Sequence record: MH383160.1
Length of the DNA: 64,000 nucleotides
Reading direction: 5' to 3' (one strand)
Shown: positions 7,026 to 62,388 of the stretch, piece by piece
Layout: every line of letters starts with the position of its first letter
Numbering within the stretch: the first letter of the stretch is position 1
Notes under the pieces: generated by a model
Told to the model about the DNA's origin: nothing
The model's input: the letters and a program-made list of their open reading frames with translations, nothing else
Databases searched by the model: none
Made by a program: the position numbers and the translations under genes

Positions 7026-7053
7026 ATTATATCATATTTTTATAAGTTGTCCC
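7026..7053 (-). promoter_or_regulatory. GGGACA-N16-TATAAT promoter (TG-extended -10)
   Basis: Minus strand TGGGACAACTTATAAAAATATGATATAAT. Confidence 0.65.
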
Positions 7054-7066
7054 ACTTATAAAAGAA

Positions 7067-10622: not shown

Positions 10623-11018
10623 TTAGTCTCCAACAAAACCTTGACGTGCAGCATAAGATGGTGCACCAGGCTCATTATAGTGTTGTACGCCTTCTTTGTC
10701 AATTGTTGGTCCCATACCTTCAGTTCCAAAACAACCTGCAATGGCTTCCAACACTTCTTCATCAGCAACTTCAGTACTTTCATCATTATATCGAATGTCA
10801 GACAAAATGTCACAGGCTTTTTGTAGTTTATCTACAATTTCTTTTTGGTCTTCACCAGATTTAATCTTATCAACAATATCAATAAGACATTTGGTAATAT
10901 CCTTAAGAACATCAACTGCTACAACATCGGATTCAACTTCAACTGAAAAACTTTCGTCTTCATCTCTTCCGGTAATTTCGTCTAACGCTTCAACTAGTTC
11001 ACGATAATTATATTGCAT
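10623..11018 (-). CDS. hypothetical acidic protein
   Basis: 131-aa ORF, GGAG SD. Confidence 0.7.
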   Translation of the reverse strand: MQYNYRELVEALDEITGRDEDESFSVEVESDVVAVDVLKDITKCLIDIVDKIKSGEDQKEIVDKLQKACDILSDIRYNDESTEVADEEVLEAIAGCFGTEGMGPTIDKEGVQHYNEPGAPSYAARQGFVGD

Positions 11019-11019
11019 A

Positions 11020-12000
11020 TTATTTGTCTCCTAAAAATTTCTTGTATTTTTCTTGGAGACTTTCAAAAATATCTTCTACTTCTTCATCAGAATCATCTTC
11101 CAAGTCAATGTTACCTTCAGGTGAATCATCTTCTTCACTTTCATTAACATTTAGTGGGTTATCTCCTAATGCAGTGCCTGGGAATTTTGGTTCAAATTTA
11201 TGAACACGATTTTCGTTCCCTTCATTATCATAATACTCAGGTTCTGGACGATTGTCAAGATCTTCATCTACAACACGTCTCCAATAAAATTGATTGCCTT
11301 TTGCAATTACAACAAAATGGTCACCTTCAACACCATTAGTCTTTAGTTGACCATCACGAACGGCATCAGCTTCAGTGTTATATGGACCATAATCAGTACT
11401 GTTAGATGGTTCTTCATCTTCAGAGATACTTAGATCTGGTAGAAATTGGGTATCTTTCATTTCTTTATCGGTAGCAGGATTACCCTCTACGGAAAAATCT
11501 TCGTCTTCTTCTTCGTTAATACCAGCAAGGGATAGCATACGACTAAAATCGAATTCTTCTTCAATAATTTCCTCTTCTTCCTCATCGTCTTCTTCAACTG
11601 ATTCTAGTTGAGGTTGACCACTAAGGTCAAGAGAAAAATCTTCTTCACCTTCTACACCTGGTTCTGAAAATTCAGCATCCATACTAACTTCATCTGTGTC
11701 AGCACCAAAATCACCAACATCAGCGGAAAGATCATCAACTGCCGCTGCTAGTGGGTCTTCAACTGAAGTTTCAATTCCACCAATTTCTTCTTCAGCACCA
11801 ATAGAATCGAGATCTAGTGGAGCAATAGGTGGAAGAGATGGAGTCATAGACCCCATTGATGGTACTGGAGCAGCAACTACTGGGTCTTGACGTTCAGCTT
11901 GACCAGCAAGAGCTAACATACGTGATAGTGTTTCCAAATCATCAGATTCTAAACCTGCGATATCGATTTTAACTTGTGCTTCATTAATTTTTTTAGCCAT
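11020..12000 (-). CDS. highly acidic protein, probable internal head/scaffold-like protein
   Basis: D/E-rich; several I/L/V-x-E motifs; TAAATA at 12034-12039. Confidence 0.5.
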   Translation of the reverse strand: MAKKINEAQVKIDIAGLESDDLETLSRMLALAGQAERQDPVVAAPVPSMGSMTPSLPPIAPLDLDSIGAEEEIGGIETSVEDPLAAAVDDLSADVGDFGADTDEVSMDAEFSEPGVEGEEDFSLDLSGQPQLESVEEDDEEEEEIIEEEFDFSRMLSLAGINEEEDEDFSVEGNPATDKEMKDTQFLPDLSISEDEEPSNSTDYGPYNTEADAVRDGQLKTNGVEGDHFVVIAKGNQFYWRRVVDEDLDNRPEPEYYDNEGNENRVHKFEPKFPGTALGDNPLNVNESEEDDSPEGNIDLEDDSDEEVEDIFESLQEKYKKFLGDK

Positions 12001-12022
12001 TTTAAATAAATCCTTTTAGTTA

Positions 12023-13540
12023 TCAATCATTATTATTTAATGATTTTAAAATTTGCACTGTTTCATCCTTTTTACCTGAAAGTAAAATGTCAGCAGCAAG
12101 TAGAGAAACCTCATCACCACGAGTTAGTAGTACTGTGATTTTTTTAGCATAAGGTGACTCTTTAATTTTAGAAGCTAATGATTGTACATCATCACCAGCA
12201 ATTGTTTCAGATTTAGTTTCTGGTTCAGAAACTTCGTCTGGTTTTTGTTCAGATTCTGGTTCTTTCTTAGGTTCTTCTTTTGATTGAATTTGCTCAGTAC
12301 CAGAGTCTACTTCAGGTGTTTCATCACTTTTAACTTCTTTATCTTGTTCATATTTGGCAAGTAATTTAGCAGCAGTTGCTTTTGGTATAAACTTACCATC
12401 AGCACTAATGAATCTGTCACCACCAACATACGAATATTCTTTGCCTTGTTTGGATTTAACTTTTGTACCGATTTTCATAGCACCGGAATTGTTATGACGG
12501 AAAATATCACGCTGTGCTGCTCGTTCAACACTTTTAGAAGCACTTGTGTTAAGTTGCTTTTTACTTTCGATATCATACCACAAGTTATTTTTCTTAGCGT
12601 ATGTTTTTCCTTTAGAAGAAGTCATTCTATAACCGTCAGGAACAGTAATGCTTTCAAATTCTTCAATTTCTTCATCTGCTTCATTAATTGATTCTTTAGT
12701 TGCAAATACTGGCTGTTTAGCTGGTTGTGAAGCTTGTTGTGGCTTTTCACCTGAACCAAAACGTTGCTCACTATGTTCTTGTTCACCCGTTAATGTTGGA
12801 AAATCACTTGGGTTATTCTTAACAAATTGCTGATATGCATTAATAATTGCATGTGCATTTTGTTCTGGAATTACTACATTACCATCATTATCACAAAATT
12901 CTTTACCATTCCACTCACAACGTGTATTGCCTTGTACTAAGGTTGATTTGATTGGAATTAGTTTATTTTTAGAAGCTAACTGACGAGCAATACGCATACC
13001 TTCATCTGATAGTTTACGGGTCATTGCTGGATCAACTGCTCGGCCTGATTTCATATCAACAAAACGGTGATTCTTTGGAACAAATTTAAAACCACTTACT
13101 TCCATACCTGCTGGAATTGATATATCATCAGCATATGGTGGAAGAATGTAAAATTTTAATGCATTCCATTCTTTTTGTAGTGTTTCTTTAGAAACATTAT
13201 ATACTCGATGATCATCTGCCATTAATTCAGTGATGAATTCACTTTCAGTTAATAGAATTCCATCTTTTGAATTGAAACGGTTTTCACCAATAAATGTACA
13301 CTCTTTACCTTCAACAATATATTTGTTACCAATCTTATATTCATTTGAAGCTAGATTGTGCTCGACAATCTGTTGTCGAGCACTTGCGTACATGGATGGG
13401 TATTTTCTAGGGTCTACCATTAACATATTATTGTCATTGAACCAGAATCCTTCAAGAAATACATATTTTGCACCAGTATGTGACGTATATACATATCCAT
13501 TAGGAACTGTGGTAGTTTCAGTACTGAAAAAATTATCCAT
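12023..13540 (-). CDS. protein with three internal repeats, probable internal virion protein
   Basis: Repeated VPxGY/IPAGM-type modules; LTESE and INEA motifs. Confidence 0.55.
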   Translation of the reverse strand: MDNFFSTETTTVPNGYVYTSHTGAKYVFLEGFWFNDNNMLMVDPRKYPSMYASARQQIVEHNLASNEYKIGNKYIVEGKECTFIGENRFNSKDGILLTESEFITELMADDHRVYNVSKETLQKEWNALKFYILPPYADDISIPAGMEVSGFKFVPKNHRFVDMKSGRAVDPAMTRKLSDEGMRIARQLASKNKLIPIKSTLVQGNTRCEWNGKEFCDNDGNVVIPEQNAHAIINAYQQFVKNNPSDFPTLTGEQEHSEQRFGSGEKPQQASQPAKQPVFATKESINEADEEIEEFESITVPDGYRMTSSKGKTYAKKNNLWYDIESKKQLNTSASKSVERAAQRDIFRHNNSGAMKIGTKVKSKQGKEYSYVGGDRFISADGKFIPKATAAKLLAKYEQDKEVKSDETPEVDSGTEQIQSKEEPKKEPESEQKPDEVSEPETKSETIAGDDVQSLASKIKESPYAKKITVLLTRGDEVSLLAADILLSGKKDETVQILKSLNNND

Positions 13541-13553
13541 GTGTTGATTCTCC

Positions 13554-14096
13554 TTAAGAAAGCATACGTAACAGTTGGTCGCGTTGCTCTGGACTTAATT
13601 TTTGTAGAGCATCAGGGATACTGGAACCTTGTGCTTTTGGTTGTTCTTGTTGTGCTGGTTGCTCAGTTGAGGTCGATTGTGATGGTTGTGATTCTGAACT
13701 TTCTTCGCCACCTTGTTGGTCACGGTAGTCATTCATTATATCACGAGCAGCATTTAATAGAGCAGTACCTACATCTTTTGGTGTAAAAGAACGACGAGGA
13801 TTGTTCCCTAAATGTTTAATATCAAGATTGTTACCTTTAAAAAACTGTGCCACATCAGCGTAAGGTACTGATGGTTGAGCTTTACCATATTTACGTCCAA
13901 CATAACGTTTAAACTCTGCCCATAAGCGGTTGGCTTCAGCACCAACTTCTTGTGCACCTTGTTCAATCTGTCCACTACCAAAAAAGCCTTTTACTTTTCC
14001 TTTTGCACTATCAACTGCACTTTGTGAACGACTATAAGGACGAGCTTCATTTAACTCATTGTCTTCATAATCTAACATTTCATTAAGTATACTCAT
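13554..14096 (-). CDS. hypothetical protein, probable internal head protein
   Basis: N-terminal ILNE/LNEA motifs; Q-rich tail. Confidence 0.55.
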   Translation of the reverse strand: MSILNEMLDYEDNELNEARPYSRSQSAVDSAKGKVKGFFGSGQIEQGAQEVGAEANRLWAEFKRYVGRKYGKAQPSVPYADVAQFFKGNNLDIKHLGNNPRRSFTPKDVGTALLNAARDIMNDYRDQQGGEESSESQPSQSTSTEQPAQQEQPKAQGSSIPDALQKLSPEQRDQLLRMLS

Positions 14097-14099
14097 GTG

Positions 14100-14636
14100 T
14101 TAATCCTTTTTACCAAAACCAGCACTCATATATTGAGAGTATTTATTGTCTTTTTTCGATGCTTCAATTGCATCATCAACGGCAGTGTCTGCACGTTGTT
14201 GTCCAGCTAAGTCATAACTGTCTTCTGGTTTGCCAAAATCCACTCCAATAACTGGTTCATCAACATCATCAAAATCGATATCATCTTCCAAATCAGTCAT
14301 TTCAATTTGACGAGGTTCATCTTTACTACGAACACGAATCAATGCTTCTGTCATGCTTAGTAAATTGCCAATTTCATACATTAGTACATTTGATTGAACG
14401 CCACGATGACATTTAAAGTCAAACATCCAAATTTCACCACAATCTAATTCATAGAAATCTAATGGTTTTTCCATAAAAATTGTTTTCTTTAGTGCTCCAA
14501 TTTCAAACGCATCATAGCGATCCATTAGTCGCTGTGTTACTTTACTAAGTTGTTCAGGTGTTGGTTCAACTGCAAACTTAACTCGGTATTCATAAACTGG
14601 TTTCTTTTCAGTTAGGATTTGTTGTAATCTATTCAT
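14100..14636 (-). CDS. hypothetical protein (late gene)
   Basis: ILTE N-terminus; TAAATA at 14665-14670. Confidence 0.65.
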   Translation of the reverse strand: MNRLQQILTEKKPVYEYRVKFAVEPTPEQLSKVTQRLMDRYDAFEIGALKKTIFMEKPLDFYELDCGEIWMFDFKCHRGVQSNVLMYEIGNLLSMTEALIRVRSKDEPRQIEMTDLEDDIDFDDVDEPVIGVDFGKPEDSYDLAGQQRADTAVDDAIEASKKDNKYSQYMSAGFGKKD

Positions 14637-14663
14637 TTTAATAACTCCATAAGGTCGTTTAAG

Positions 14664-16771
<2,108 letters not shown>

Positions 16772-16782
16772 TCATTATCTCC

Positions 16783-17559
16783 TTAAAATCCTACACTACC
16801 AAAAACACGATCAATGATATCTAAACCTTGATTGACATTTTCAGGTAAAAGTGAATTAATTCTGGTACTATACATTTCTTCAATATTATCAAATTGTATA
16901 CAATTATCTGGTTTGATAGTCACTACCATTTCAACTGGAGAACTTGAGCTATAATCTAATGAATCGTATGATATGTTTTGAATAACACATCCGGTTAAAA
17001 CAAAGTATTCCATAACACCAGCACTGTTATATGAAGAACCACCAATAAATTGATCTACTGCATTTACTAAGCCAGAATTATTTGTTGCAGCAGTTGCAGC
17101 ATCTACTAGAGTATCTCTTCCTAGATTTCCTAGTGTATCATCTGAGTTACGTCCACTCAACATCTGTATAACCAAACCAAATTTATAAGATCCATAATCT
17201 TGGTCATTTCTGGAAGTTATTCTACGTTGAAAGTCAAGTTGTTTTTGTAATTGTCGTGATAATGCTTTTGCTGATGCATTACCAACTGAATCACGAATAG
17301 ATATTGTAATTGGTTCCCAATCATGACTACCTATATAGGAAGTATTAGTAGTAAATTGATATAGTTTATGAGTACTAAATGTTACAGTAGGTCTATCAAT
17401 TTTATCAACATCTAATGCGATGTGATCACGTTCATCTATATCAGTACCGAAATTATACACAATAACACGAAACTTGTATTTTGCTTTCGGTTGTAGCATT
17501 GAACGATTACGCCCCGATGGTAAAGGAACGCCATATTTATTAATCATGTTATTTGCCAT
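16783..17559 (-). CDS. tail tube protein paralog (gp19-like)
   Basis: Start moved to ATG 17559 (GAGG SD); KAKYKFRV...WEPITISIRDSVGN; paralogous to 17656..18342. Confidence 0.75.
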   Translation of the reverse strand: MANNMINKYGVPLPSGRNRSMLQPKAKYKFRVIVYNFGTDIDERDHIALDVDKIDRPTVTFSTHKLYQFTTNTSYIGSHDWEPITISIRDSVGNASAKALSRQLQKQLDFQRRITSRNDQDYGSYKFGLVIQMLSGRNSDDTLGNLGRDTLVDAATAATNNSGLVNAVDQFIGGSSYNSAGVMEYFVLTGCVIQNISYDSLDYSSSSPVEMVVTIKPDNCIQFDNIEEMYSTRINSLLPENVNQGLDIIDRVFGSVGF

Positions 17560-17596
17560 AGCAACCTCTTTTTTTATTTTATAAGGCATTATACTT

Positions 17597-17602
17597 TATT
17601 TA
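17597..17602 (-). promoter_or_regulatory. putative late promoter (TAAATA)
   Basis: 38 nt upstream of tube paralog start. Confidence 0.55.
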
Positions 17603-17655
17603 GCATAAAAAAAGCCCCGAATAGATTCGAGGCTATATATTAAGTTTAAATAAAA

Positions 17656-18342
17656 TTAATTTTCGTAGAAGTTACTATCTGGTAGAGTAGTACTACTAAT
17701 ATTAGTTTGTGCACCAGAAATAGAGGTAGCAGTTGATGGATTACCGAAGCCACTAACTTCATCACCGAACGCTTCGCCATTTGGACCCAATTTAGCACAA
17801 CCATCTGGTTGAACAGTCATTGAAATAACTTGTGCTTCACTTGAGGAATAATCCCAATCACCAAAGTTGCTGGATTCAATAAAGCAACCTTGACATACCC
17901 AAGTACTCAATGTTCCTTCAAACAAGTTTGTTGTATTTTCACTATTAGAACCATCAAGTTCTTGAATCCACATTTCGAATTTAAATTGTGAATCAGTCAT
18001 GCGAGATTCTTGACTGTAGTAGTTGAATTCTTTACGCATTTGGTTGTATAGTGCTTTAGCAGAAGCATTACCTACTGAGTCACGGAAAGCAACATCAATT
18101 GTATCCCAAGTGTACTTACCTTTATAGTGTGCAGAACTGTTGTAACTATGAACAGTGACATTTTCATGTGATACAGATACTGCCCCAACTGTATTGGTGT
18201 CTAGTGTAATCATATTACCATCATCATTAGTACCAAAACCAAAGAAAATAACACGAAATTTGTATTTTGCTTTTGGTTGTTTCATAGAGATACGACCACC
18301 GCCAGCGAGCGGTACGCCATATCGATCAAGCATTGTAGCCAT
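17656..18342 (-). CDS. tail tube protein (gp19-like)
   Basis: KAKYKFRV...WDTIDVAFRDSVGN, W.CQGCFI, WDYSSSE; downstream of sheath gene. Confidence 0.8.
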   Translation of the reverse strand: MATMLDRYGVPLAGGGRISMKQPKAKYKFRVIFFGFGTNDDGNMITLDTNTVGAVSVSHENVTVHSYNSSAHYKGKYTWDTIDVAFRDSVGNASAKALYNQMRKEFNYYSQESRMTDSQFKFEMWIQELDGSNSENTTNLFEGTLSTWVCQGCFIESSNFGDWDYSSSEAQVISMTVQPDGCAKLGPNGEAFGDEVSGFGNPSTATSISGAQTNISSTTLPDSNFYEN

Positions 18343-18377
18343 TTATATTCTCCTATTATGGAATGACATCTTTATAT

Positions 18378-18383
18378 TATTTA
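18378..18383 (-). promoter_or_regulatory. putative late promoter (TAAATA)
   Basis: 36 nt upstream of tube gene. Confidence 0.55.
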
Positions 18384-18402
18384 TCTATCTGGAAGTATAT
18401 TT

Positions 18403-18658
18403 TTAATTAACTAAAGTGTCATCAACAGGGAACCAATTAATATTAACACAATATAAGTATCTTTTTCGTTTAGTGTGGTCAATATAGTTTACTGATATAG
18501 ACCATTTTCCATTTGTGTATACTTCGTATTTTTCAATTATACCGACAATCTTCCAAATTTTTTAAAAATATATTTAGTATGTGTACTGATTCCAACTGAG
18601 TTAAAACTATTTTACTGACATCTTGTATTGTTTTTTTTAGTATTTCTTCCATATCCAT
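18403..18658 (-). pseudogene. possible small gene broken by a +1 frameshift
   Basis: ATG 18658 with AAGGA SD gives MDMEEILKK...FLKNLEDCRYN*; the +1 frame continues IWKIVGII...VDDTLVN* across a T5A6 run. Confidence 0.35.
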
Positions 18659-18710
18659 AATGTTCCTTTATAACATCAATATAAAGGTATTTAATTTTAA
18701 TCAATAAAAA

Positions 18711-18730
18711 AGGGAACCAAAAGGTTCCCT
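18711..18730 (-). terminator. intrinsic terminator after sheath gene
   Basis: AGGGAACC-AAAA-GGTTCCCT with A run on + strand. Confidence 0.85.
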
Positions 18731-18737
18731 TAGTGTT

Positions 18738-21401
18738 TTATTGAGTTTTCTCGATACGGATTGGTACGTAAATGAAGTTAATACTCTTAGTTGGTTGAAT
18801 TGCAATATCCATCCAAAGTTCATTACGGTCAATACGCTCTGCGGTGTTGTTACTTTCATCACAAACCACTGCGAAGTTATAAAGACCCTGTTGTTGAACA
18901 ATTTCAGCCAAGAAGCTATTAACTACACCACTAAATTCCTGACGAGTACTTGGAGTATTCAAACGGAATAGGAATGGTTCGGAAATAATTTCTAGTTGAC
19001 GACGAATATAAACAACTAAACGAGCAACGTTAACACGACTTAGTGCAGAAGTTTGATTAGCAGATAGAGTTTTATCTCCATAAACAAGCAAACCACGGTT
19101 AGGACGCATTGCAATTGGGTTAATGTTGTTAGTATACATAACGTCACGTTGACCTTGGTTGTATACTACTGGTTGATATTCACCTTCGCTGTTGATAAAA
19201 CCAGTACTTGCAGCGTTTGTTACAACACCACGAGTTGTACCAGCAGGTGGATACCATACATAACTAACACTATCACTGTATGCATATGTACGCATTGCAA
19301 TAGTACTACCAGGAACTGCAACTTCTTCACCATCAACGTTAGTACTTAGACACCAACCCATATACTGAGCAGCATAATCATAAGCAGTTGTACGACCAAC
19401 TGAACCGTTGCTTGGTGCATTGTTAGCATTAGTAGCCCATTGTTGTACAGCACTACCGTTTCCGGTTGGATTCAAACGTGCTGGAACGTCAGTAACAATA
19501 AATGCAGTTTCTTTACGATCAGTGTTTAAAGTTACACATTCATCAAGTGTTTCAACGTAACCAGGTACACAAATTAGGTTAAAATCAATAAATTCAGAAC
19601 GAATGTCATCATTACCAATAATAACAGCAGCTAGTGCTTCAACTACTAGTTGACGTTGTGCAGCACGACCAAATAGGCCAGCACCATCAAGACTTACACC
19701 ACTAACAACTTCCCATTGACCATTAACCATTTTCTTAACAACACCTTCAGTGTTACCTAGGTCAACTGCAAGCATACCATTTTGATACAATGCCGCAGCA
19801 GGAACTTGGCTTGGGAAATTAAAGTCTTGGAAAATCATACCATTTAGTGTACTTTGATCAGTACTGTCAAGTTTAACCCATTCACCATCAACGTTACGAT
19901 AGAAATCATAACCATCAATGCCTTGAGACAAAGGACAAACCCAAATTAAACGGTCAGCCGCTGGTTCATCAACTTGTACATATTTGTTTTCTTCTTGTAC
20001 TAGATCCCATTCATCATTAGCAACATCAGCAACATACATAGTTACAGTTAGATTATCGGAGTTCCCGAAATCATACCAGAGAGTTCCTTCTTTTGCTACA
20101 CTACGTGGTACTGAATAACTAACACGGAAGTTATTCACGTTAATTAGAGAGTAGTTGTTACTATCTACTGTTAGTTTTTGTAGTTCAGATTCAGCAAAAA
20201 TATCATCACCACTTTGTGTGATTTTGAAACTGTAACCTTTTGTATTGGAAACAACTAAACCACCATTAGTTTCACGTTTAAATTTAAAACCATCGTTAAT
20301 AATTTCAGCATTTGCATTTAGATTATTGATGATAGTTTGGGTATTAATAACACCGCCTTGTGGAACTGCTAGTACTTTAACTGATTTATTCAAATAAACA
20401 AAAGTCATATAACTATCAGCACCTGCTTGTTCAATAATAGTTTCACCAAGTGGCAAAGCAGGAGCACTAATTGTTGTTAGTTTTGCACTTTGAATATAGA
20501 AAGAGAAACTCTTACTATCTTCATCAAAACGAGATGCGATATAACTATTGTTTAGTACACCACTTTTCGCTTCAATTTCTTGGAATGAATTACCAGTATA
20601 TGCTGGTACAATATTCCAAACTTGAGTTAGGGATGCATAACGTTTAATAACAAAACGAGTACCAAAATAGTTTGAACCATTTTGGGTGTAACCATCACGA
20701 ATCCAAATGTTACCTTTTTCTACAGTTGAGCCAACTGGAACTTTGTTAATTGGTGATAGATAAGTTTCCATTTGCACTAGCCCAGAAGCAGAACGTTTAT
20801 ACATTAGCATCTGACCATTGCTTGGTTTGTAACGTAGAACTAAATCATCAACATTTAAACCTACTAGACTTACATCTTCAACTTCTTCAGCACTTACAAT
20901 AGTTACTGGCTTAAGTTGCCAATCATAAAAACTGCTTGGACTATCTTTCTTCGCTACATACGCTTCTACTTGTGATTGTGCGGTATCAAACCACAAAGTA
21001 CCATTGGATACTGGGCCAGTTGGTGCTTCAGCACTTGGTGCTAGTTGTGCTAGATCGATATCAGCACGAATTACATATGCACGGTTAGTAATGCCTAGAT
21101 AAGAATATACTGCATGTAGGCCATATTCGTTTAGTTCATCACCTTGAACAACAGAACCGTTATTCATTTGAAAAATTGGTGTACCATAGGTATCAAGTGA
21201 GCTTTTTTGTGATGTTAGAAGCTGTAGTTTTCCAGCGTTTGCTTTAGTAGTTCCCGCAGCTATTGCACTGCTTCCTGGGACAAGTTTGTCTTCAGCAGTA
21301 GCGATTACAAATAGTGGTACAGTGCCAGGAGCAGCAGCGGTACTCATACTTTCATCAGTTACTGAAATGGAAACGCCAGGTGAGAGTAGATCTCCTGCCA
21401 T
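18738..21401 (-). CDS. contractile tail sheath protein (gp18-like)
   Basis: LSPGVSISVTDES N-terminus; PPAG.TRG, NINPI, YGDKTL, RVNVARL, ERIDRNELWMDIAIQP. Confidence 0.95.
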   Translation of the reverse strand: MAGDLLSPGVSISVTDESMSTAAAPGTVPLFVIATAEDKLVPGSSAIAAGTTKANAGKLQLLTSQKSSLDTYGTPIFQMNNGSVVQGDELNEYGLHAVYSYLGITNRAYVIRADIDLAQLAPSAEAPTGPVSNGTLWFDTAQSQVEAYVAKKDSPSSFYDWQLKPVTIVSAEEVEDVSLVGLNVDDLVLRYKPSNGQMLMYKRSASGLVQMETYLSPINKVPVGSTVEKGNIWIRDGYTQNGSNYFGTRFVIKRYASLTQVWNIVPAYTGNSFQEIEAKSGVLNNSYIASRFDEDSKSFSFYIQSAKLTTISAPALPLGETIIEQAGADSYMTFVYLNKSVKVLAVPQGGVINTQTIINNLNANAEIINDGFKFKRETNGGLVVSNTKGYSFKITQSGDDIFAESELQKLTVDSNNYSLINVNNFRVSYSVPRSVAKEGTLWYDFGNSDNLTVTMYVADVANDEWDLVQEENKYVQVDEPAADRLIWVCPLSQGIDGYDFYRNVDGEWVKLDSTDQSTLNGMIFQDFNFPSQVPAAALYQNGMLAVDLGNTEGVVKKMVNGQWEVVSGVSLDGAGLFGRAAQRQLVVEALAAVIIGNDDIRSEFIDFNLICVPGYVETLDECVTLNTDRKETAFIVTDVPARLNPTGNGSAVQQWATNANNAPSNGSVGRTTAYDYAAQYMGWCLSTNVDGEEVAVPGSTIAMRTYAYSDSVSYVWYPPAGTTRGVVTNAASTGFINSEGEYQPVVYNQGQRDVMYTNNINPIAMRPNRGLLVYGDKTLSANQTSALSRVNVARLVVYIRRQLEIISEPFLFRLNTPSTRQEFSGVVNSFLAEIVQQQGLYNFAVVCDESNNTAERIDRNELWMDIAIQPTKSINFIYVPIRIEKTQ

Positions 21402-21451
21402 ATTAAATCCTCCAAAAATAATTGGTTATTCGAAATATATTCGTATAGTCT

Positions 21452-21457
21452 TATTTA
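21452..21457 (-). promoter_or_regulatory. putative late promoter (TAAATA)
   Basis: 51 nt upstream of sheath start. Confidence 0.5.
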
Positions 21458-21495
21458 TTGAAGGATTTAATTGTCCAGTCCTTATTGTTTATAAT

Positions 21496-22122
21496 TTATG
21501 TATTAGAATAAATAATGTCCATTGCTTTTTTATGTAAATCATCAATAGTACTGTTATTCTGTACAATTATATCAGGATTGTTTATGCCAATCCAAGCCCA
21601 CTCAGATTCGTGTACTGATTCTAGTTCAACTGGTTTAATATTAATATCCCCTTTATTATAAGAGGCCGCCAAACCATACCAATGTGGTAGAACACGTTGA
21701 ACTTCAATAATAGTCCCATTTTGCGATCTAATCATTTTTAATTCATTTGGAAAACGGCAATCAGTGATGATGATATTTCCATCTATTTCTTGCATTGATT
21801 TTTCTAAACTGAATACCCAAATATCATTATGAAAATACTTACGCAAAATATTAGTACCATAATTCTGCAATACCCATCGAGGGGATACATCACTACGACC
21901 TAACTTATCACACCAGTACTGGTCCGGTTCTTCACGAATCTTACGACTTTCCTTAGTTGAACCTTCAAGCATTTCACGATCCCATCCAAAAATAGCAGCA
22001 ACGGAATCTTTAAGATTAGTTGCAAATGACATTCTGGTGTAACCATTATTAATAAAAGTTTCTCCAAAAGTATCTTTACCACTTCCAATAGTACCGTTAA
22101 TTGCAATTATTTGTCTTTCCAT
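21496..22122 (-). CDS. deoxynucleoside monophosphate kinase (T4 gp1-like)
   Basis: INGTIGSGKDT P-loop; SPRWVLQNYGT; ITDCRFPNE; HESE. Confidence 0.9.
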   Translation of the reverse strand: MERQIIAINGTIGSGKDTFGETFINNGYTRMSFATNLKDSVAAIFGWDREMLEGSTKESRKIREEPDQYWCDKLGRSDVSPRWVLQNYGTNILRKYFHNDIWVFSLEKSMQEIDGNIIITDCRFPNELKMIRSQNGTIIEVQRVLPHWYGLAASYNKGDINIKPVELESVHESEWAWIGINNPDIIVQNNSTIDDLHKKAMDIIYSNT

Positions 22123-24734: not shown

Positions 24735-24783
24735 TATATTCTCCGAAAAGAAAGGACTCTGTGGTCAGAGTCCTTATTTTAAA

Positions 24784-25041
24784 TTATTCTTCTTCACCGA
24801 AACGGATTTTCTTTAATTCTTTTCGATGCTTTCTAGCTATTGTACTTTTGTGAAGTCTATTACTGCGTTTTGTGTCTTTTGTAATGTACCATGAATCTTC
24901 TGGTGCATCATAATCACAAAATCCATCTTCCGTAATTGTTCCTAAAAATGCAGATTTTTTAGGAATATTAGTTTGAGCTTTAGCCTGAAATTGACCTTTT
25001 GCTAATTGTTCACGAAAACTGAGCATAATAGTATCTCCCAA
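24784..25041 (-). CDS. hypothetical basic protein
   Basis: 85-aa ORF; start uncertain. Confidence 0.6.
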   Translation of the reverse strand: MGDTIMLSFREQLAKGQFQAKAQTNIPKKSAFLGTITEDGFCDYDAPEDSWYITKDTKRSNRLHKSTIARKHRKELKKIRFGEEE

Positions 25042-25072
25042 ATTGTTAAGAAGAACTTTTTGTTCTTCACAT

Positions 25073-25324
25073 TTATTTAGGGTTGCCAGAAACCTTCACA
25101 TATTTGATAAATGCCAAAATATCATCTTTACTAAAAGATTTTACAATAAATTCGACAGCGGAATCATACTGTTCTTGTTTAGATAGATATTCTTTCATCT
25201 TGTTAATTTTAATCTGGGCTTTTTCTTTAGCTATTGAAATATCAGGAATTTTGAACTCTACTCCCAACGTATCAGCTAGTTGTTTTGCACGAGATGATAC
25301 TTTTTCAATATCCATTAGTTCCAA
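25073..25324 (-). CDS. hypothetical protein
   Basis: 83-aa ORF overlapping glutaredoxin stop. Confidence 0.65.
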   Translation of the reverse strand: MELMDIEKVSSRAKQLADTLGVEFKIPDISIAKEKAQIKINKMKEYLSKQEQYDSAVEFIVKSFSKDDILAFIKYVKVSGNPK

Positions 25325-25563
25325 CGACCTTCTTTAAGACCTTCAATAAACCCAGTACAACCACCTGGTACATAAATGTCATTTACGAAAATTTGAGGAA
25401 CTTGACGAACTGGTTCACCACAAATTTCAGACAGTTTTGAACCATCGATACCTTCAGCAACAATATCTACAAACTCCATTTCAAATTTATTTTGTTCACA
25501 TACAGCTTTTGCAGTGTCGCAAAATTTACAACCAGTCTTGCGACCATAAATTTTAACTTTCAT
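25315..25563 (-). CDS. glutaredoxin
   Basis: IYGR..CKFC, VPQIFVN, GGCT. Confidence 0.92.
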   Translation of the reverse strand: MKVKIYGRKTGCKFCDTAKAVCEQNKFEMEFVDIVAEGIDGSKLSEICGEPVRQVPQIFVNDIYVPGGCTGFIEGLKEGRWN

Positions 25564-25564
25564 G

Positions 25565-26038: not shown

Positions 26039-26066
26039 ATTATATCAGTTATTGGTTTTTTGTCCC
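26039..26066 (-). promoter_or_regulatory. GGGACA-N16-TATAAT promoter
   Basis: Minus strand TGGGACAAAAAACCAATAACTGATATAAT. Confidence 0.65.
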
Positions 26067-26073
26067 ACTATTT

Positions 26074-35571: not shown

Positions 35572-36012
35572 TTATTGTAAAACTTTAAGTTTGTAAAGTG
35601 TTCCTTCAACAAAACTCATAATATCTTCTAATGTGTTTACACTGCCGTAATCACCTGATTCTTCAAGCATATCATGAATTGCTCTACATTGCTCTACATA
35701 TTCTTCAAGAATTGGTACACAATCTTCAATTGGTGTAAAACGATAACTATTACCAGTTCCAACTTGTAAAGCACCACGATTATTCATGATACCTTCAACA
35801 AATGCGTCTACATATTCTGGTAATTCTTTATATAGTTCATCTAATTGTAAATGCTTTGTATAAAAATGACATTGTAAGTGCCAGTTATGTGCAGCAGAAC
35901 TTAAAAACAAACTATTTTCAATAAAAGTTAATAGTACTTCATCATACGAATTATCTTCTTCAGTACTTCCGATAAAGTCCATTACGTGTCGTAAATCATT
36001 AATATCTTCCAT
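35572..36012 (-). CDS. ferritin-like (Dps-type) four-helix protein
   Basis: AHNWHL...H..LDELY..L.E.VD.FVE pattern; TAAATA at 36042-36047. Confidence 0.7.
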   Translation of the reverse strand: MEDINDLRHVMDFIGSTEEDNSYDEVLLTFIENSLFLSSAAHNWHLQCHFYTKHLQLDELYKELPEYVDAFVEGIMNNRGALQVGTGNSYRFTPIEDCVPILEEYVEQCRAIHDMLEESGDYGSVNTLEDIMSFVEGTLYKLKVLQ

Positions 36013-36044: not shown

Positions 36045-36473
36045 TTAGTTAATAATAAAGGTAATTTCAGGATTCATTTCAGAAACTGCATTGCGTTTAC
36101 TTCTATCCCATAGTATTCTGTTATTATACAAAGAAGAATCACATACTACAAGTAAGCAATTTCTTAATCTACTTACAGTACTTTGATTATTTAAATCAGT
36201 TTCTGAAATAAAAAATACATTTTCAGGAACTACTAAAGGAATAGATTTATCAAAAAACAAAACTACAATAGGTCTTGTTGTATGAACTGATTTAACGAAA
36301 TCCAAAATACTATTATAAAAATTAGTTTCTTTAGTAATTACTGACGGATCTTTAATTCTTTTCAAATATTGCTGTGGTAATTGTTGTTCGTCTTTTATCT
36401 GAAACTCAAAATATTCTTTGAATAACATTTGTGTTAATTCGGATTTATCGGATATTTTCGTTGTGTTACTCAT
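36045..36473 (-). CDS. hypothetical protein
   Basis: 142-aa ORF. Confidence 0.65.
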   Translation of the reverse strand: MSNTTKISDKSELTQMLFKEYFEFQIKDEQQLPQQYLKRIKDPSVITKETNFYNSILDFVKSVHTTRPIVVLFFDKSIPLVVPENVFFISETDLNNQSTVSRLRNCLLVVCDSSLYNNRILWDRSKRNAVSEMNPEITFIIN

Positions 36474-36612
36474 TCACTTCGTTCTCTCGTAACTCAAGAA
36501 GTCACTGCGTTTACTTCGTAAACTAGTTCCTTCTGAAAATGATAATGTACTTTAAAAACTTGACGGGATTTGTTGAGGACTATTACATCCCCCCGCAGGG
36601 GAATGAAGGTAA

Positions 36613-36640
36613 TAAAAAAGAGACAATTAAGTCTCTCTTG
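36613..36640 (-). terminator. intrinsic terminator closing the non-coding island transcript
   Basis: Minus strand AAGAGAGAC-TTAATT-GTCTCTTTTTT. Confidence 0.7.
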
Positions 36641-37128
36641 ACGATGATGGCATCGGATATTATCGAATTGCGAATTTCTCAAATTTTGGACGGATCTTTC
36701 TTGTACCAAAATTTAGAGAGCGAAAGCGGGTTGCTCGGTTTCTCTCTATCGCAGTCATATGCAACGGTCGCTGGTCTTTTCATCAACAGCACTCAGTACT
36801 AACTCTATTCGATCAAAGTAGTACTTGTTCTCAAATTTTGGACGCAACTTTCTTGTGAAAATTGCGTCCGCTATTCTTGAACTCCCTTAGCAAATCTGGT
36901 AAGGTGCGAACCTTATACATCTATCTAGGAACTCTCTGTATGCTTATCGGAGTTCTTTATACAGCCGTGTCGCCGTGATTCGTGGTCTTACATCGTGTTT
37001 GTTTGAATGCCAGTACTCTAACAGGTTTCTTCTGCTGTTCGCTACAACGGTAAAGCTCATCTATCCTTTACATTTTCAAGAGAAGTAGGTTCTCAGTGTC
37101 CATTTTTCAATGTCCGTTGTCATTTTCT
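36615..37128 (-). ncRNA. candidate ~510-nt structured non-coding RNA (alternatively an origin-like element)
   Basis: Bounded by a promoter and terminator; no convincing ORF; multiple hairpins; internal 29-nt direct repeat. Confidence 0.4.
36676..36856. repeat. 29-nt direct repeat pair (36676-36704 and 36828-36856)
   Basis: TTCTCAAATTTTGGACG(G/C)A(T/A)CTTTCTTGT, 27 of 29 identical. Confidence 0.9.
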
Positions 37129-37134
37129 ATATAC

Positions 37135-37162
37135 ATTATATCATTGGAACATATAATGTCCC
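37135..37162 (-). promoter_or_regulatory. GGGACA-N16-TATAAT promoter
   Basis: Minus strand TGGGACATTATATGTTCCAATGATATAAT. Confidence 0.65.
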
Positions 37163-37163
37163 A

Positions 37164-37562
37164 TTACATGTATACTTTTTTTAAATCCTTAGAACAACGA
37201 TCAAAAATTGTGTTTATGAATTCAACATCTTCGATAATATTCGAATCGTTAGCAACATTTTCATTTCTTGTCGTGTTCCTATATGTGTGTTCAGGATGAT
37301 TGTATACCACCTTGACTACATTATTTAGGTCTATAAAATTTGACGTTTTTTGCGTGTAGGAAGCCTGAAGCTTGATGAGTTTACCATCATTCTCAAGATT
37401 GGTTTTATGAATTAGTTCTTCAATACCAGTTAAATGGCTATAGCTATCTTTTTCTTTTACAAAAGTAATAGTAACAAGAACTGCTTTCTCATCTCGCATA
37501 TCGGAAATGTTTTTTACAGCACTGATAATTTCTAAGTTTGAAAAATCTAATTCTTTAAGCAT
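37164..37562 (-). CDS. hypothetical protein
   Basis: Start moved to ATG 37562, directly after the upstream stop. Confidence 0.65.
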   Translation of the reverse strand: MLKELDFSNLEIISAVKNISDMRDEKAVLVTITFVKEKDSYSHLTGIEELIHKTNLENDGKLIKLQASYTQKTSNFIDLNNVVKVVYNHPEHTYRNTTRNENVANDSNIIEDVEFINTIFDRCSKDLKKVYM

Positions 37563-37563
37563 T

Positions 37564-37920
37564 TTACAAATATTTCCACAAAGTTCGATAAGTGATAATT
37601 TCTTCTCTGGTAACAGAAACTTCATTGCACTTAATACCATCAGTTTCAGTACTGAATGGTTGTACTGGTCTATCTTCTGTTAAACCTCGTTCATAATTAC
37701 AATGATAAAACTTATTTGTGCTCATGTCAAGAAATACGAGATCAAATTCTTCAGTCCACCTTTTGTGTCCTTTGCTTTCATTGCAGATGATTTTATATTT
37801 TACATCTGGTTTAAAAGTTTCAGTACTGTCATCCCATGCACCATAGTCAGTATATTCATCATTTTCATCTAACTCTGCTAGATGCCACATTAATTGTGGT
37901 AAAAAGATTTTAGATTTCAT
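37564..37920 (-). CDS. hypothetical protein
   Basis: GGAG SD; 118 aa. Confidence 0.7.
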   Translation of the reverse strand: MKSKIFLPQLMWHLAELDENDEYTDYGAWDDSTETFKPDVKYKIICNESKGHKRWTEEFDLVFLDMSTNKFYHCNYERGLTEDRPVQPFSTETDGIKCNEVSVTREEIITYRTLWKYL

Positions 37921-37972: not shown

Positions 37973-38584
37973 TCAATCATGTTTATTCAATTTCTTCTGT
38001 TCTTTTTTCAAAGCTTTCATATGACGACCAAACTCTCGAACATGCCATAGATGATCAGTTTCCCATAATTCTTGACGTAACCTACGTTCTTCTAGTAGTT
38101 TCGACTTGTCAATGTTATTTTTCTTTTTTTGTACATTAAAGAAATTATTCATATGTTCTTGGAGAAGATTACGACCTTTAACTTTCTCAAGAAACTCATC
38201 AACTGTTTCAGTTTTATTCGAACGTAGTTGATTACATCTGGAGCACATAGTATTAAAGTTTGACTCTAAATCAGGTCCACCCTTAGATGCCAGATGATTA
38301 TGGTCAACTGTCATTAAAACTTCATAAAGACCACATACAGCATATACATTTAAATGTGGTTTACCATATACTGGATCAGAACATAATGAACGTTCAATGC
38401 GTACTTCAGTAGCTTCAATCCCACATGCCACGCATTTTGGATTCTTAACAAAAGTAAGAACTTTTTGTGGGAAATATCGAAAAGTAATACCATTTAAAGT
38501 GTAGCGTTTCATCTTAGTACTTCGTTGATTTAATTCTTCAAGAAGTGATAATTTTGTCGTATAGTAAACATGATATTTGTTCAT
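37973..38584 (-). CDS. HNH endonuclease
   Basis: CVAC; MTVDH.H.ASKGG.D..SN.NTMCSRCN; start moved to 38584. Confidence 0.8.
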   Translation of the reverse strand: MNKYHVYYTTKLSLLEELNQRSTKMKRYTLNGITFRYFPQKVLTFVKNPKCVACGIEATEVRIERSLCSDPVYGKPHLNVYAVCGLYEVLMTVDHNHLASKGGPDLESNFNTMCSRCNQLRSNKTETVDEFLEKVKGRNLLQEHMNNFFNVQKKKNNIDKSKLLEERRLRQELWETDHLWHVREFGRHMKALKKEQKKLNKHD

Positions 38585-38585
38585 T

Positions 38586-38894
38586 TTATTCCTTGATATT
38601 GATTTTAATATCTTTACCTTGTAAATCACGAATAGTTTTAATCAATGCGTCGTGTTTTAAAGCACATTCATTGTAGACTGCATCCCAACGAGTAAGTACT
38701 TTAAGAATTTCTGCACCATCATAACCTTTAAAACCATTTTTGTCAATCATAATTTTTTGTGGTAGAGGTGTATCATCATCACATCTTTCTAACAGAATTT
38801 CTTGTTTAATTGGTGCGGGGGATTGTAGTTTTACTTGCTCGGCACACCCACTTATAATTAAAAAAGAAATCATTGGAACTAATAATTTTTTCAT
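38586..38894 (-). CDS. o-spanin (Rz1-like lipoprotein)
   Basis: Lipobox IISGC; extra Cys residues; overlaps i-spanin stop. Confidence 0.8.
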   Translation of the reverse strand: MKKLLVPMISFLIISGCAEQVKLQSPAPIKQEILLERCDDDTPLPQKIMIDKNGFKGYDGAEILKVLTRWDAVYNECALKHDALIKTIRDLQGKDIKINIKE

Positions 38895-61908: not shown

Positions 61909-62134
61909 ATGAAATCTCCTTTAAGTTAAAATAACCTAATGGAAAGTCATTCTTCCTTTAATACATGTTCTCATGATTTGTTCCTTTTGTCAAGATATAG
62001 ATATAAAAAATCCCTGCCAAAAGACAGGGACGAAAAACTGAAATAACACATGGAGTTCTTTTTAATTTAATAAAAAGTATTATTATTCTTATAAAAGTAT
62101 TTATTAAGAACTCCACAATATGTCTTCAAATGAA

Positions 62135-62354: not shown

Positions 62355-62388
62355 ATTATATCATGTATGGGACATTATGTCCCATACA
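62355..62388 (-). promoter_or_regulatory. GGGACA-N17-TATAAT promoter embedded in a perfect inverted repeat
   Basis: TGTATGGGACAT-T-ATGTCCCATACA at 62364-62388; TGATATAAT -10. Confidence 0.65.

Follow-up and report, generated by a model that had tools for sequence, protein, structure and literature searches.

A multi-copy non-coding RNA family with a predicted intricate fold, absent from Rfam, in RaK2-like jumbo phages

The 64,000-nucleotide stretch of record MH383160.1 which was analysed here as a whole (the window) belongs to Escherichia phage UB (Asteriusvirus), a RaK2-like jumbo phage. Between two minus-strand ORFs, one encoding a 142-aa protein of unknown function and one a 158-aa DUF7325 protein, lie 690 bases (36474-37163) without any ORF of 90 aa or more. 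By that crude measure this is the second-largest such stretch in the window, the largest being 24735-25564 (830 bp), so that an earlier sequence-only reading which had called it the largest gap was nearly right. The GC content is 0.39-0.43 at 36450-37050 compared with 0.25-0.32 in the flanks. On the minus strand the region contains a promoter, an RNA gene of about 515 nt, a hairpin-plus-U terminator and a conserved trailer of about 130 nt, the features of which are presented in Table 1. The downstream neighbour matched phrog_35272 (E = 1e-97) and is not annotated in the GenBank record.

Table 1. Features of the RNA module of phage UB and its neighbours, in window coordinates
Feature	Coordinates	Strand	Description
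Upstream neighbour gene	37164..37640	-	158 aa, DUF7325; not part of the element
Promoter	37135..37163	-	TGGGACA-N16-TGATATAAT (extended -10); predicted start near 37128
Structured ncRNA gene	36614..37128	-	About 515 nt
5' domain	37044..37120	-	Contains PK1, P2, P3 and P4
Pseudoknot PK1	37114-37120/37044-37050	-	ACAACGG with CCGUUGU, the latter being the loop of P4
Hairpin P2	37100-37113	-
Hairpin P3	37061-37088	-	Conserved loop GAAAAUGUA
Hairpin P4	37041-37056	-	Flanked by GAUGAG...CGAA, read by eye as a tandem G-A motif
Central domain	36900..37038	-	Contains P5 to P8 and a tertiary contact
P5	37034-37038/36961-36965	-
P6	37021-37024/36973-36976	-	Variable long or short insert between its two strands
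P7	36951-36955/36929-36933	-
P8	36900-36915	-
Tertiary contact	36968-36970/36917-36919	-	3 bp, ACA with UGU
P9	36827..36882	-	GUUC/GAAC; encloses site A
Site A hairpin (optional)	36840-36869	-	GGACGCAA/TTGCGTCC, 13 bp
Hairpin P10	36795..36825	-	Its loop forms one strand of PK2
Pseudoknot PK2	36807-36813/36662-36668	-	AUCGAAU with AUUCGAU
Core pseudoknot	36662..36769	-	Most conserved block; 36721-36769 (49 nt) nearly invariant
P13	36761-36765/36730-36734	-	GUUGC/GCAAC; crosses P12 and P15
P12	36749-36753/36669-36673	-	UGCGA/UCGCA
P15	36742-36746/36722-36726	-	GAGAG/CUUUC
P14	36716-36719/36677-36680	-	Continues into site B
Site B hairpin (optional)	36681-36714	-	AAATTTTGG/CCAAAATTT
Hairpin P16	36637..36654	-	Ends in motif M1 (CGUCAAG, 36637-36643)
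Intrinsic terminator	36614..36635	-	Hairpin 36620-36635, U-run 36614-36619
Conserved trailer	36498..36605	-	Follows the terminator; contains H2, the block with M2, and H3
Hairpin H2	36586-36605	-	CCCC-UGCG-GGGG
Trailer block	36560-36572	-	CAAAUCCCGUCAA; ends in M2 (36559-36565)
Hairpin H3	36498-36517	-	Loop of the GAACGNAGUGA type
Downstream neighbour gene	36045..36473	-	142 aa, unknown function; not part of the element

A promoter scan returned GGGACA-16-TATAAT with TG before the -10 box at 37162-37135 on the minus strand, with 10 of 12 positions matched. In an alignment of 34 copies of the element the -10 box was invariant and the TG invariant or nearly so. The promoter is one of 20 of its class in phage UB, the "divergent RpoD-like" class (PMC5259590) which also precedes the DNA-metabolism genes. 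The transcription start is inferred rather than mapped and promoter function was not assayed, but the position immediately upstream of the RNA is that expected of a stand-alone ncRNA gene. The terminator folds at -10.8 kcal/mol (z = -4.5). Although the simple scan did not list it, five of the six pairs of its helix (one lies in a column gapped in this copy) show compensatory changes across relatives, and a conserved T-run follows. It is absent from two paralog groups, and the 3' end is to that extent uncertain.

To determine how widely the element is distributed we searched 50,697 phage records by BLAST. All 72 RaK2-like records carried 1-5 matches (one only in a 22-23 kb partial record), and no other phage record did. 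Phage Sharanji, an Asteriusvirus isolate, is recorded on the laboratory E. coli K-12 strain MG1655. Phage UB has four copies, at about 18, 99, 155 and 260 kb of its map; a candidate fifth, the gap at L010:12260-13182 (L010 being our handle for that stretch), did not align, and no hit was found in 50-62 kb. There is no second copy inside the window, only a 29-nt, 93% identical direct repeat which represents the insertion module at sites A and B. Pattern scans of viral, metagenome and genome collections returned jumbo-phage contigs of about 350 kb and shorter fragments of 2-179 kb (a few which were checked, such as the fragment labelled L049, are phage-like), plus one MAG, while plasmids gave no match. 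The window copy is closer to copies from GAP32 and Yersinia phage (74%-75%) than to its own sister copies, indicating ancient paralogy.

We collected 34 distinct copies with pairwise identity as low as 49%, and these support a 104-pair model with at least three pseudoknots. In this alignment 92.6% of cells were paired, against 38%-43% when the partners were slid, and there were 575 compensated cells against 50-121 when slid, which 0 of 500 shuffles reached; 73 pairs carried compensatory changes. The structure was derived from the same alignment on which it was first counted, a weakness mitigated by two further results. Fourteen copies not used to build the model kept 79%-97% of its pairs; at 70%-79% identity, 11-18 double changes kept pairing against 2-3 which broke it. 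APC-corrected mutual information, which uses no pairing rules, also placed the helix pairs at the top. G-U pairs fix the folding strand as the promoter strand, and the whole 515-nt RNA of the window copy folds at -132.8 kcal/mol (z = -4.66).

Support differed between the domains. In the 5' domain 7 of 8 pairs of helix 1 and 13 of 15 pairs of helices 2-4 were compensated, although in the window row PK1 had to be placed by direct complementarity because the alignment shifts there. In the central domain (helices 5-10) the alignment pairs 165/252, 167/250, 245/299 and 261/286 ranked among the top of 163,878 by mutual information. All 4 pairs of P9 (helix 11) were compensated. For P10 and PK2, helix 13 was 98.7% paired with 6 of 7 pairs compensated and a sequence of its own in each paralog, and pairs 453/611, 455/609 and 457/607 ranked among the top. 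The core pattern occurs once in the window with 0 expected; there, helices 14-16 were 100% paired with 3, 4 and 1 compensated pairs, and helix 17 was 95.6% paired with 4. P16 (helix 18) is weak, being 84.6% paired without compensation and ambiguous in register.

The block in the trailer occurs exactly once per element and nowhere else in the phage, which rules it out as a general phage promoter motif, and the H2-M2 trailer was never found without the core. A sigma-70 promoter on the opposite strand was considered by eye but the scan lists none. H2 (helix 20) keeps G-U pairs on the minus strand. H3 stems differ between copies while the loop is kept, and the H3 hairpin in the window copy is weak. 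A search inside the module for a common complementary partner of M1 and M2 found none.

The observation made in the sequence-only reading is confirmed: the region is truly non-coding, and transcript length, strand, promoter and terminator are as it had given them. Of the five stems it named, GAACTC/GAGTTC (36929-36955) and TAAGGT/ACCTTA (36900-36915) are real and conserved with covariation, corresponding to P7 and P8. Two others are the site A hairpin (z = -8.3) and the site B hairpin (z = -3.9), both of which are insertion modules present in only some copies. The fifth, AGAGAG/CTCTCT (36715-36747), is complementary in this copy, but relatives favour two other mutually exclusive pairings, P14 and P15 (77.6% paired against 100% and 95.6%), so that it is not the pairing which comparison supports.

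That reading had specified in advance what would count against a large structured RNA, and where these conditions could be examined the outcome favoured an RNA in each case. Covarying pairs among relatives are abundant, as described above, and in no relative does the region align with an intact gene. The small ORFs (87 aa on the plus strand; 71 and 38 aa on the minus strand) are not conserved in extent or frame, some copies hold only one or two ORFs of 35 aa or more, the 87-aa ORF has no Pfam match, and the frame of a possible tiny peptide starting in H2 differs by eye between copies. The presence of a discrete transcript was not measured here, as we found no RNA-seq of any RaK2-like phage in the literature and no expression data exist for any member. 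The interpretation offered there, a large ncRNA with its own promoter and terminator, is supported, while its alternative of an origin is neither shown nor excluded. That the element is one of four paralogs, that the predicted fold is pseudoknotted, that a conserved trailer follows the terminator and that the module also occurs in bacterial chromosomes could not be seen from the one sequence.

No known RNA family was recognised. Rfam 15, which includes ROOL, GOLLD, OLE, raiA, HEARO, RNase P, group I/II introns, tmRNA, 6S, riboswitches and small ribozymes, gave 0 matches at gathering score in the whole window; at permissive E-values only chance-level hits to snoRNA/miRNA models (E about 1-9, bits far below threshold) appeared in 36300-37400, and nothing fell on the element in five divergent copies or in the chromosomal copies. 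ARAGORN found 0 tRNA or tmRNA genes in the window. Resemblances to a hammerhead, RNase P, HDV-type or tmRNA core were considered by eye and dropped, and none was used as evidence.

The neighbours of the copies belong to unrelated families in Pfam and PHROG searches, and no conserved neighbouring protein could be identified as a partner. Copy A, in UB and in Serratia phage BF, and the MAG copy face convergent genes. An intact copy of the module alone lies in a defence island of two E. coli chromosomes, beside ffs and next to the candidate defence system PDC-M45. This island copy forms 94 of the 104 model pairs and is followed by about 650 nt of non-coding DNA, and the flanking island genes have no jumbo-phage relatives. 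The copy in the MAG, which is of Enterobacteriaceae, lies beside a CI-like repressor. Occurrence of the family in bacterial chromosomal islands is rare.

Several known RNAs may be compared with the element. Like ROOL and GOLLD, the comparison drawn in the sequence-only reading, it is a phage-borne, elaborately structured RNA of more than 500 nt with its own promoter and terminator and without known function; it differs in giving no match to either covariance model even at E-value 10, in having several paralogs per genome, in being confined to RaK2-like phages of Enterobacterales and relatives, and in the trailer which follows its terminator. ColE1 RNA II and the R-loop transcripts of T4 ori(uvsY)/ori(34) share with it a structured transcript of about 0.5 kb from its own promoter (predicted for the present RNA), several sites per genome (as in T4), expression with replication functions (inferred for the present RNA) and conserved DNA just downstream, but the present RNA ends in an intrinsic terminator and its fold is far more complex; there is no sequence likeness that we could test. 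The pRNA of phi29 is also a phage-encoded structured RNA, with loop-loop pairs which covary and can be intermolecular; the present RNA is three times larger and in several copies, its phage has a T4-type terminase, a type not known to need an RNA, and no homology was tested or found in Rfam. In Pseudomonas jumbo phage PA5oct, which is distantly related, ncRNA001 and ncRNA002 are unannotated transcripts of 236 and 451 nt, abundant in RNA-seq and of unknown function (PMC7318152). They lie in the terminal repeat, their structure was not analysed, and nhmmer with --max detected no sequence relation (E > 10). The HK022 put RNAs are likewise folded nascent RNAs just downstream of a phage promoter and upstream of a terminator, but put is about 70 nt and always faces the genes it switches on.

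What the analysis establishes is that 36474-37163 is a self-contained RNA gene module on the minus strand, one of four ancient paralogs in this phage and a member of a family which every RaK2-like jumbo phage carries and Rfam 15 does not contain. What follows is inference, to which we assign a probability of roughly 0.55. The product would work as a folded RNA, not as an antisense RNA or an mRNA, and would present its nearly invariant pseudoknotted core to a partner, which could be a protein, a ligand or other copies of itself. Most likely it acts in trans during the middle, DNA-replication, phase of infection, the several copies then serving dosage or slightly different specificities. Because the module alone, without any phage protein gene, has been taken up by a bacterial defence island and by another integrated element, the partner is more likely a host component, or something that only matters when such a phage infects, which would point to conflict between mobile elements, and less likely a protein encoded next to the module. 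We have to concede that no partner or activity can be named, that this reading does not explain the M1/M2 repeat, which changes by identity, and that several dispersed, syntenic, same-strand copies plus a conserved stretch after the terminator are at least as natural for a cis-acting DNA/RNA element as for a trans-acting RNA.

The strongest alternative, which we consider possible but unlikely, is a cis-acting replication-origin module in which the transcript stays on, or returns to, its template as a primer or R-loop, in the manner of ColE1 RNA II or the T4 transcripts, with the trailer hairpins forming on the displaced sense strand and helping to load the lagging-strand machinery. Chromosomal islands which captured the module would then be copied when such a phage infects. 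The two to five dispersed copies per genome, all on one strand in each genome examined, the promoter class tied to DNA-synthesis genes, the hairpins and G-run of a trailer never separated from the core, the T4-type replication genes and RNase H gene of the phage, and the movement of the module as a unit into other mobile elements speak for an origin, although the promoter and trailer are compatible with one without being specific to it. However, the RNA ends in a good terminator in most copies, and a multi-pseudoknot fold with many invariant unpaired bases is far more elaborate than any known primer RNA. Cumulative GC skew simply follows gene direction, with no turning point at three of the four copies, an outcome which in T4-like phages speaks neither for nor against an origin, there is no direct evidence of initiation, and neither the start of DNA synthesis nor RNA-DNA hybrids were measured.

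A homo-oligomeric assembly of the ROOL/GOLLD kind, for which a cryo-EM study gives the precedent (10.1101/2024.12.08.627333) and in which PK1 and PK2 would form between molecules and their paralog-specific sequences would keep the four RNAs from mixing, is doubtful. The RNA is large, ornate and phage-borne, both pseudoknots are fully paired loops differing in sequence in each paralog, and covariation does not tell intra- from intermolecular pairs; yet both are sterically plausible within one molecule, there is no homology to ROOL or GOLLD, and oligomerisation was not assayed. Less likely still is a cis-regulatory leader controlling read-through of its own terminator, either riboswitch-like or as a processive antiterminator like put. 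The order of promoter, structured RNA, terminator and same-strand gene in the window copy and in copy C, the two paralog groups without a terminator, and the G-U pairs of H2, which imply some read-through, would fit, but the convergent genes at copy A and the MAG copy, the non-coding DNA after the island copy and the unrelated downstream genes do not, and the RNA is far larger than known leaders. A protein-coding region or decayed gene is very unlikely, for although some GenBank records list a "hypothetical protein" or tiny CDS under the match, substitutions follow base-pairing and not codons. A further view, possible but unlikely, which nothing here rules out, is that of a portable RNA-centred device used in conflicts between mobile elements, either as an RNA-primed origin borrowed by chromosomal islands so that an infecting jumbo phage copies them, or as an RNA-only factor which both phages and defence islands deploy against competitors; the M1/M2 repeat flanking the terminator and H2 would then be the recognition or processing sites of a machinery not yet described.

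Few large, intricately folded bacterial and phage RNAs are known, and each new class, such as RNase P, group I/II introns, OLE, ROOL and GOLLD, has opened new biology. The present family, which is absent from Rfam and from the literature we could search, has several marks of function: it is strongly conserved from Klebsiella to Xanthomonas phages, it has at least three predicted pseudoknots and a nearly invariant core, and it is kept in two to five copies in every member of a whole clade of about 350-kb phages, some of which are being characterised for therapy. The spurious small proteins annotated over it in GenBank records could be corrected, and its capture as a bare module by a defence island gives a concrete handle on function. 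If it proves to be an origin or a conflict device, it would also bear on how jumbo phages start replication or fight competitors, neither of which is known for this clade.

The sequence examined is from Escherichia phage UB (MH383160.1, Asteriusvirus PBECO4), a 353-kb RaK2-like jumbo myovirus, to which the 1.1 kb around the element is 100% identical, and base 1 of the window corresponds to base 62001 of the record. What had been observed in the sequence-only reading, a GC-rich, structured gap with its own promoter and terminator, held on re-examination, although the claim that this was the largest gap was not quite exact. The two flanking minus-strand ORFs are separated by 690 bases which contain no ORF of 90 aa or more, and by this measure it is the second-largest such stretch in the window, the largest being a stretch which does hold ORFs of 60–89 aa and was not examined. 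The GC content was 0.39–0.43 compared to 0.25–0.32 in the flanks. The promoter GGGACA-16-TATAAT, with TG before the -10 box, was confirmed, and the terminator hairpin followed by U6 folds at -10.8 kcal/mol (z = -4.5). The 515 nt from the predicted start to the U-run fold at -132.8 kcal/mol (z = -4.66). Coordinates are listed in the table below.

Positions of the RNA module, its copies and neighbouring features (window coordinates unless another sequence is named)
Feature	Position	Strand	Remark
Largest stretch without an ORF of 90 aa or more	24735-25564		830 bp
Gene two genes downstream of the RNA	35572-36012	-	146-aa protein
ORF flanking the gap	36045-36473	-	142 aa
M2, 7-mer after hairpin H2	36559-36565		alignment columns 720-726
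Terminator hairpin	36620-36635		followed by U6
M1, 7-mer at the end of the core	36637-36643		alignment columns 631-637
RNA, from predicted start to U-run	about 37128 to 36614		515 nt
29-nt direct repeat	36676-36704 and 36828-36856		93% identical
Nearly invariant block	36721-36769		49 nt
Promoter of the RNA	37162-37135	-
ORF flanking the gap	37164-37640	-
HNH endonuclease gene	37973-38629	-	annotated in the record
Promoters of the class in the window	7026-7054, 26039-26067, 37135-37163, 62355-62384	-	16 more elsewhere in phage UB
Copy A	18.0-18.6 kb of the UB record	-
Copy C	154.3-154.9 kb of the UB record	-
Copy D	259.3-259.8 kb of the UB record	-
E. coli island, locus L056	about 10900-21500 of the locus		NZ_AP027515.1
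E. coli island, locus L057			NZ_CM130020.1
Region with the copy in an Enterobacteriaceae MAG, locus L032	5385-7830 of the locus		CAUSEC010000004.1
Two copies on one metagenome contig, locus L047	115-303 and 960-1549 of the locus		OGVK01004308.1
CDS annotated inside the RNA gene, locus L003	2703-2855 of the locus		fHe-Yen9-04 g347, g348
CDS annotated inside the RNA gene, 121Q			gene 516
CDS annotated inside the RNA gene, locus L062	736-980 of the locus

The downstream flanking ORF matches phrog_35272 (E = 1e-97) but is not annotated in the GenBank record of phage UB, which makes the unannotated gap look larger (1.15 kb) than it is. The gene two positions downstream of the RNA encodes a protein with DUF5856 and a weak ferritin-like/Dps-like match (PHROG 'starvation-inducible transcriptional regulator'). 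An HNH endonuclease gene lies about 0.8 kb upstream of the RNA gene and another HNH gene lies near the divergent copy on contig L049, but no consistent association was seen.

To determine whether the element is unique we searched for it in other genomes. BLASTN found the region in 72 phage records, all of them RaK2-like jumbo phages (Asteriusvirus, Mimasvirus, Eneladusvirus, Alcyoneusvirus and unclassified Salmonella, Klebsiella, Erwinia and Xanthomonas phages), with identity falling to 66–70%; full-length records held 2–5 matches and one partial record of 22–23 kb held one. When a divergent chromosomal copy was used as the query the same 72 records and no others were returned among 50,697. 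Phage UB has four copies, of which the element described here is copy B, and the stretch 50–62 kb of the record holds none. Copy A lies between a small gene next to the baseplate-hub gene and the endonuclease VII gene and is antisense to both neighbours, while copy D lies just downstream of a sigma-factor gene. The context of copy A recurs in Serratia phage BF and that of copy D in RaK2. The window copy is 74–75% identical to copies in GAP32 and Yersinia phage fHe-Yen9-04 and is less similar to its own sister copies, so the paralogs predate the genera. Exact-pattern scans of IMG/VR, JGI metagenomes and GTDB genomes returned contigs of about 350 kb and shorter fragments (2–179 kb), a few of which were checked and were phage-like, plus one MAG. 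On one short metagenome contig of the RaK2 type two copies of the RNA, one of them only a partial match, lie within 1.5 kb, and tandem arrangement therefore occurs.

An Rfam search and a comparison with coding regions of relatives had both been put forward in the sequence-only reading as ways to check the proposal of an RNA. Rfam 15 gave no match at gathering score in the window, and only chance-level hits in the region, in five divergent copies and in the chromosomal copies, and ARAGORN found nothing. The ORFs of 35 aa or more in the 34 distinct copies share neither bounds nor frame, some copies having only one or two, and the 87-aa ORF has no Pfam match. Several GenBank records annotate tiny or hypothetical CDS inside the RNA gene; none is conserved and they are probably spurious. 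Literature searches on these phages, on jumbo-phage ncRNAs and on ROOL/GOLLD found no description of the element.

Covariation among relatives, likewise proposed in advance as a test, was examined in an alignment of 34 distinct copies (20 clusters at 90% identity, minimum identity 49%) from which helices were derived by pair statistics. APC-corrected mutual information, which uses no pairing rules, placed the proposed pairs among the top about 70 of 163,878 column pairs, outside one region that exists in two alternative forms. The resulting model of 104 pairs in 20 helices had 92.6% of cells paired, compared to 38–43% for partners slid by 1–3 columns, and 73 pairs and 575 cells with changes on both sides, compared to 24–33 pairs and 50–121 cells when slid; none of 500 shuffles reached these values. 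Since the model was chosen on that same alignment, it was also tested on 14 copies not used to build it, from Salmonella phage Munch, phage EJP2, Erwinia phage Kaldavass, Xanthomonas phage XaC1, the E. coli island and nine further paralogs. These form 79–97% of the pairs, against 29–49 pairs when slid, and at 70–79% identity to the nearest training copy 11–18 double changes keep pairing against 2–3 that break it.

In the model, pseudoknot PK1 pairs a 5' strand with the whole loop of a hairpin flanked by GAUGAG...CGAA, which we read by eye as a tandem G-A motif. Pseudoknot PK2 pairs the 7-nt loop of hairpin P10 with a strand 140 nt downstream; six of its seven pairs are compensated and each paralog has a different sequence. 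Helix P13 crosses P12 and P15 inside the nearly invariant block, and a covarying 3-bp tertiary contact is present. Two optional hairpin modules share the 29-nt repeat, the same hairpin-forming module being inserted at two different places in the fold, and other copies have it at one site, the other, both or neither. G-U pairs are frequent, so the promoter strand is the one that folds. Of the five stems proposed from the sequence alone, two (P7 and P8) are conserved helices and two are the optional modules, while AGAGAG/CTCTCT is outcompeted by P14 and P15.

After the terminator come a very stable hairpin H2 (CCCC-UGCG-GGGG), the conserved block CAAAUCCCGUCAA and, in most copies, a hairpin H3 with variable stems and a conserved 11-nt loop. 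The block occurs once per element and nowhere else in the phage, and a scan for H2 plus the block found 27 viral loci, every one with the core upstream. Two paralog groups lack the terminator and run straight into H2, and H2 also keeps G-U pairs on the sense strand, which together suggest some read-through. We have no explanation for the behaviour of M1 and M2, a direct repeat which flanks the terminator and H2 and whose two copies change together by identity (CGUCAAG, CGUCAG-, CGUCAAA/U, CUUCAAG) in all 43 copies checked (34 training and 9 held-out). The agreement is per copy and not per genome, and no common complementary partner was found inside the module.

The promoter belongs to a sharply defined class, TG(G/A)(G/A)ACA-N16-18-TATAAT, usually with TG before the -10 box, which occurs 20 times in phage UB, mostly before DNA-metabolism genes. 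It matches the "divergent RpoD-like" promoters which the phage CBB paper links to DNA-synthesis genes (PMC5259590). The last of the four in the window overlaps a palindrome, TGGGACATAATGTCCCA.

Outside phages, two of 5,426 complete E. coli genomes carry an intact copy in the chromosome, with the promoter, the core, both optional modules, the terminator and the trailer, which forms 94 of the 104 model pairs. This copy lies in an island of about 10.5 kb beside the 4.5S RNA gene ffs, which also holds the candidate defence system PDC-M45 (DuOB, DUF488, mSLOG-DUF4326), a DNA invertase and a tyrosine integrase gene broken once by an insertion sequence. About 650 nt of non-coding DNA with tandem 13-nt repeats and a 23-nt inverted repeat follow the RNA module. 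The island copy is nearest (82–83%) to the endonuclease VII-context copies of Eneladusvirus phages, whereas the island genes next to it have no jumbo-phage relatives, so the module moved alone. A more divergent copy (64–65% identity) was found in an Enterobacteriaceae MAG, in AT-rich foreign DNA inserted just upstream of the thiM TPP riboswitch, where it lies between that riboswitch and a convergent CI-like (HTH + S24 peptidase) repressor gene; only part of that element was examined. No copy was found in PLSDB plasmids.

The interpretation of the gap as a large structured ncRNA is supported, while the origin that had been offered as its alternative is kept here as a tentative rival, in the form of a cis-acting primer-RNA origin. 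Several same-strand copies, the promoter class, the inseparable trailer and the portability of the module all speak for an origin. The terminator and the elaborate fold speak against it or are neutral, as does the GC skew, an analysis suggested beforehand for this purpose, which was silent and leaves the matter undecided. A homo-oligomeric assembly like ROOL/GOLLD is considered unlikely, a regulatory leader is less likely still and is contradicted by the convergent contexts, and a coding role is very improbable. PA5oct, a distant relative for which RNA-seq exists, has abundant ncRNAs of similar size, but these are not detectably related to the element.

What the analysis demonstrates is a stand-alone gene module for a large pseudoknotted RNA of a new family. 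Beyond this we infer, with a probability of about 0.55, that the product acts as a folded RNA in trans during the replication phase and that its partner is not encoded next to it.
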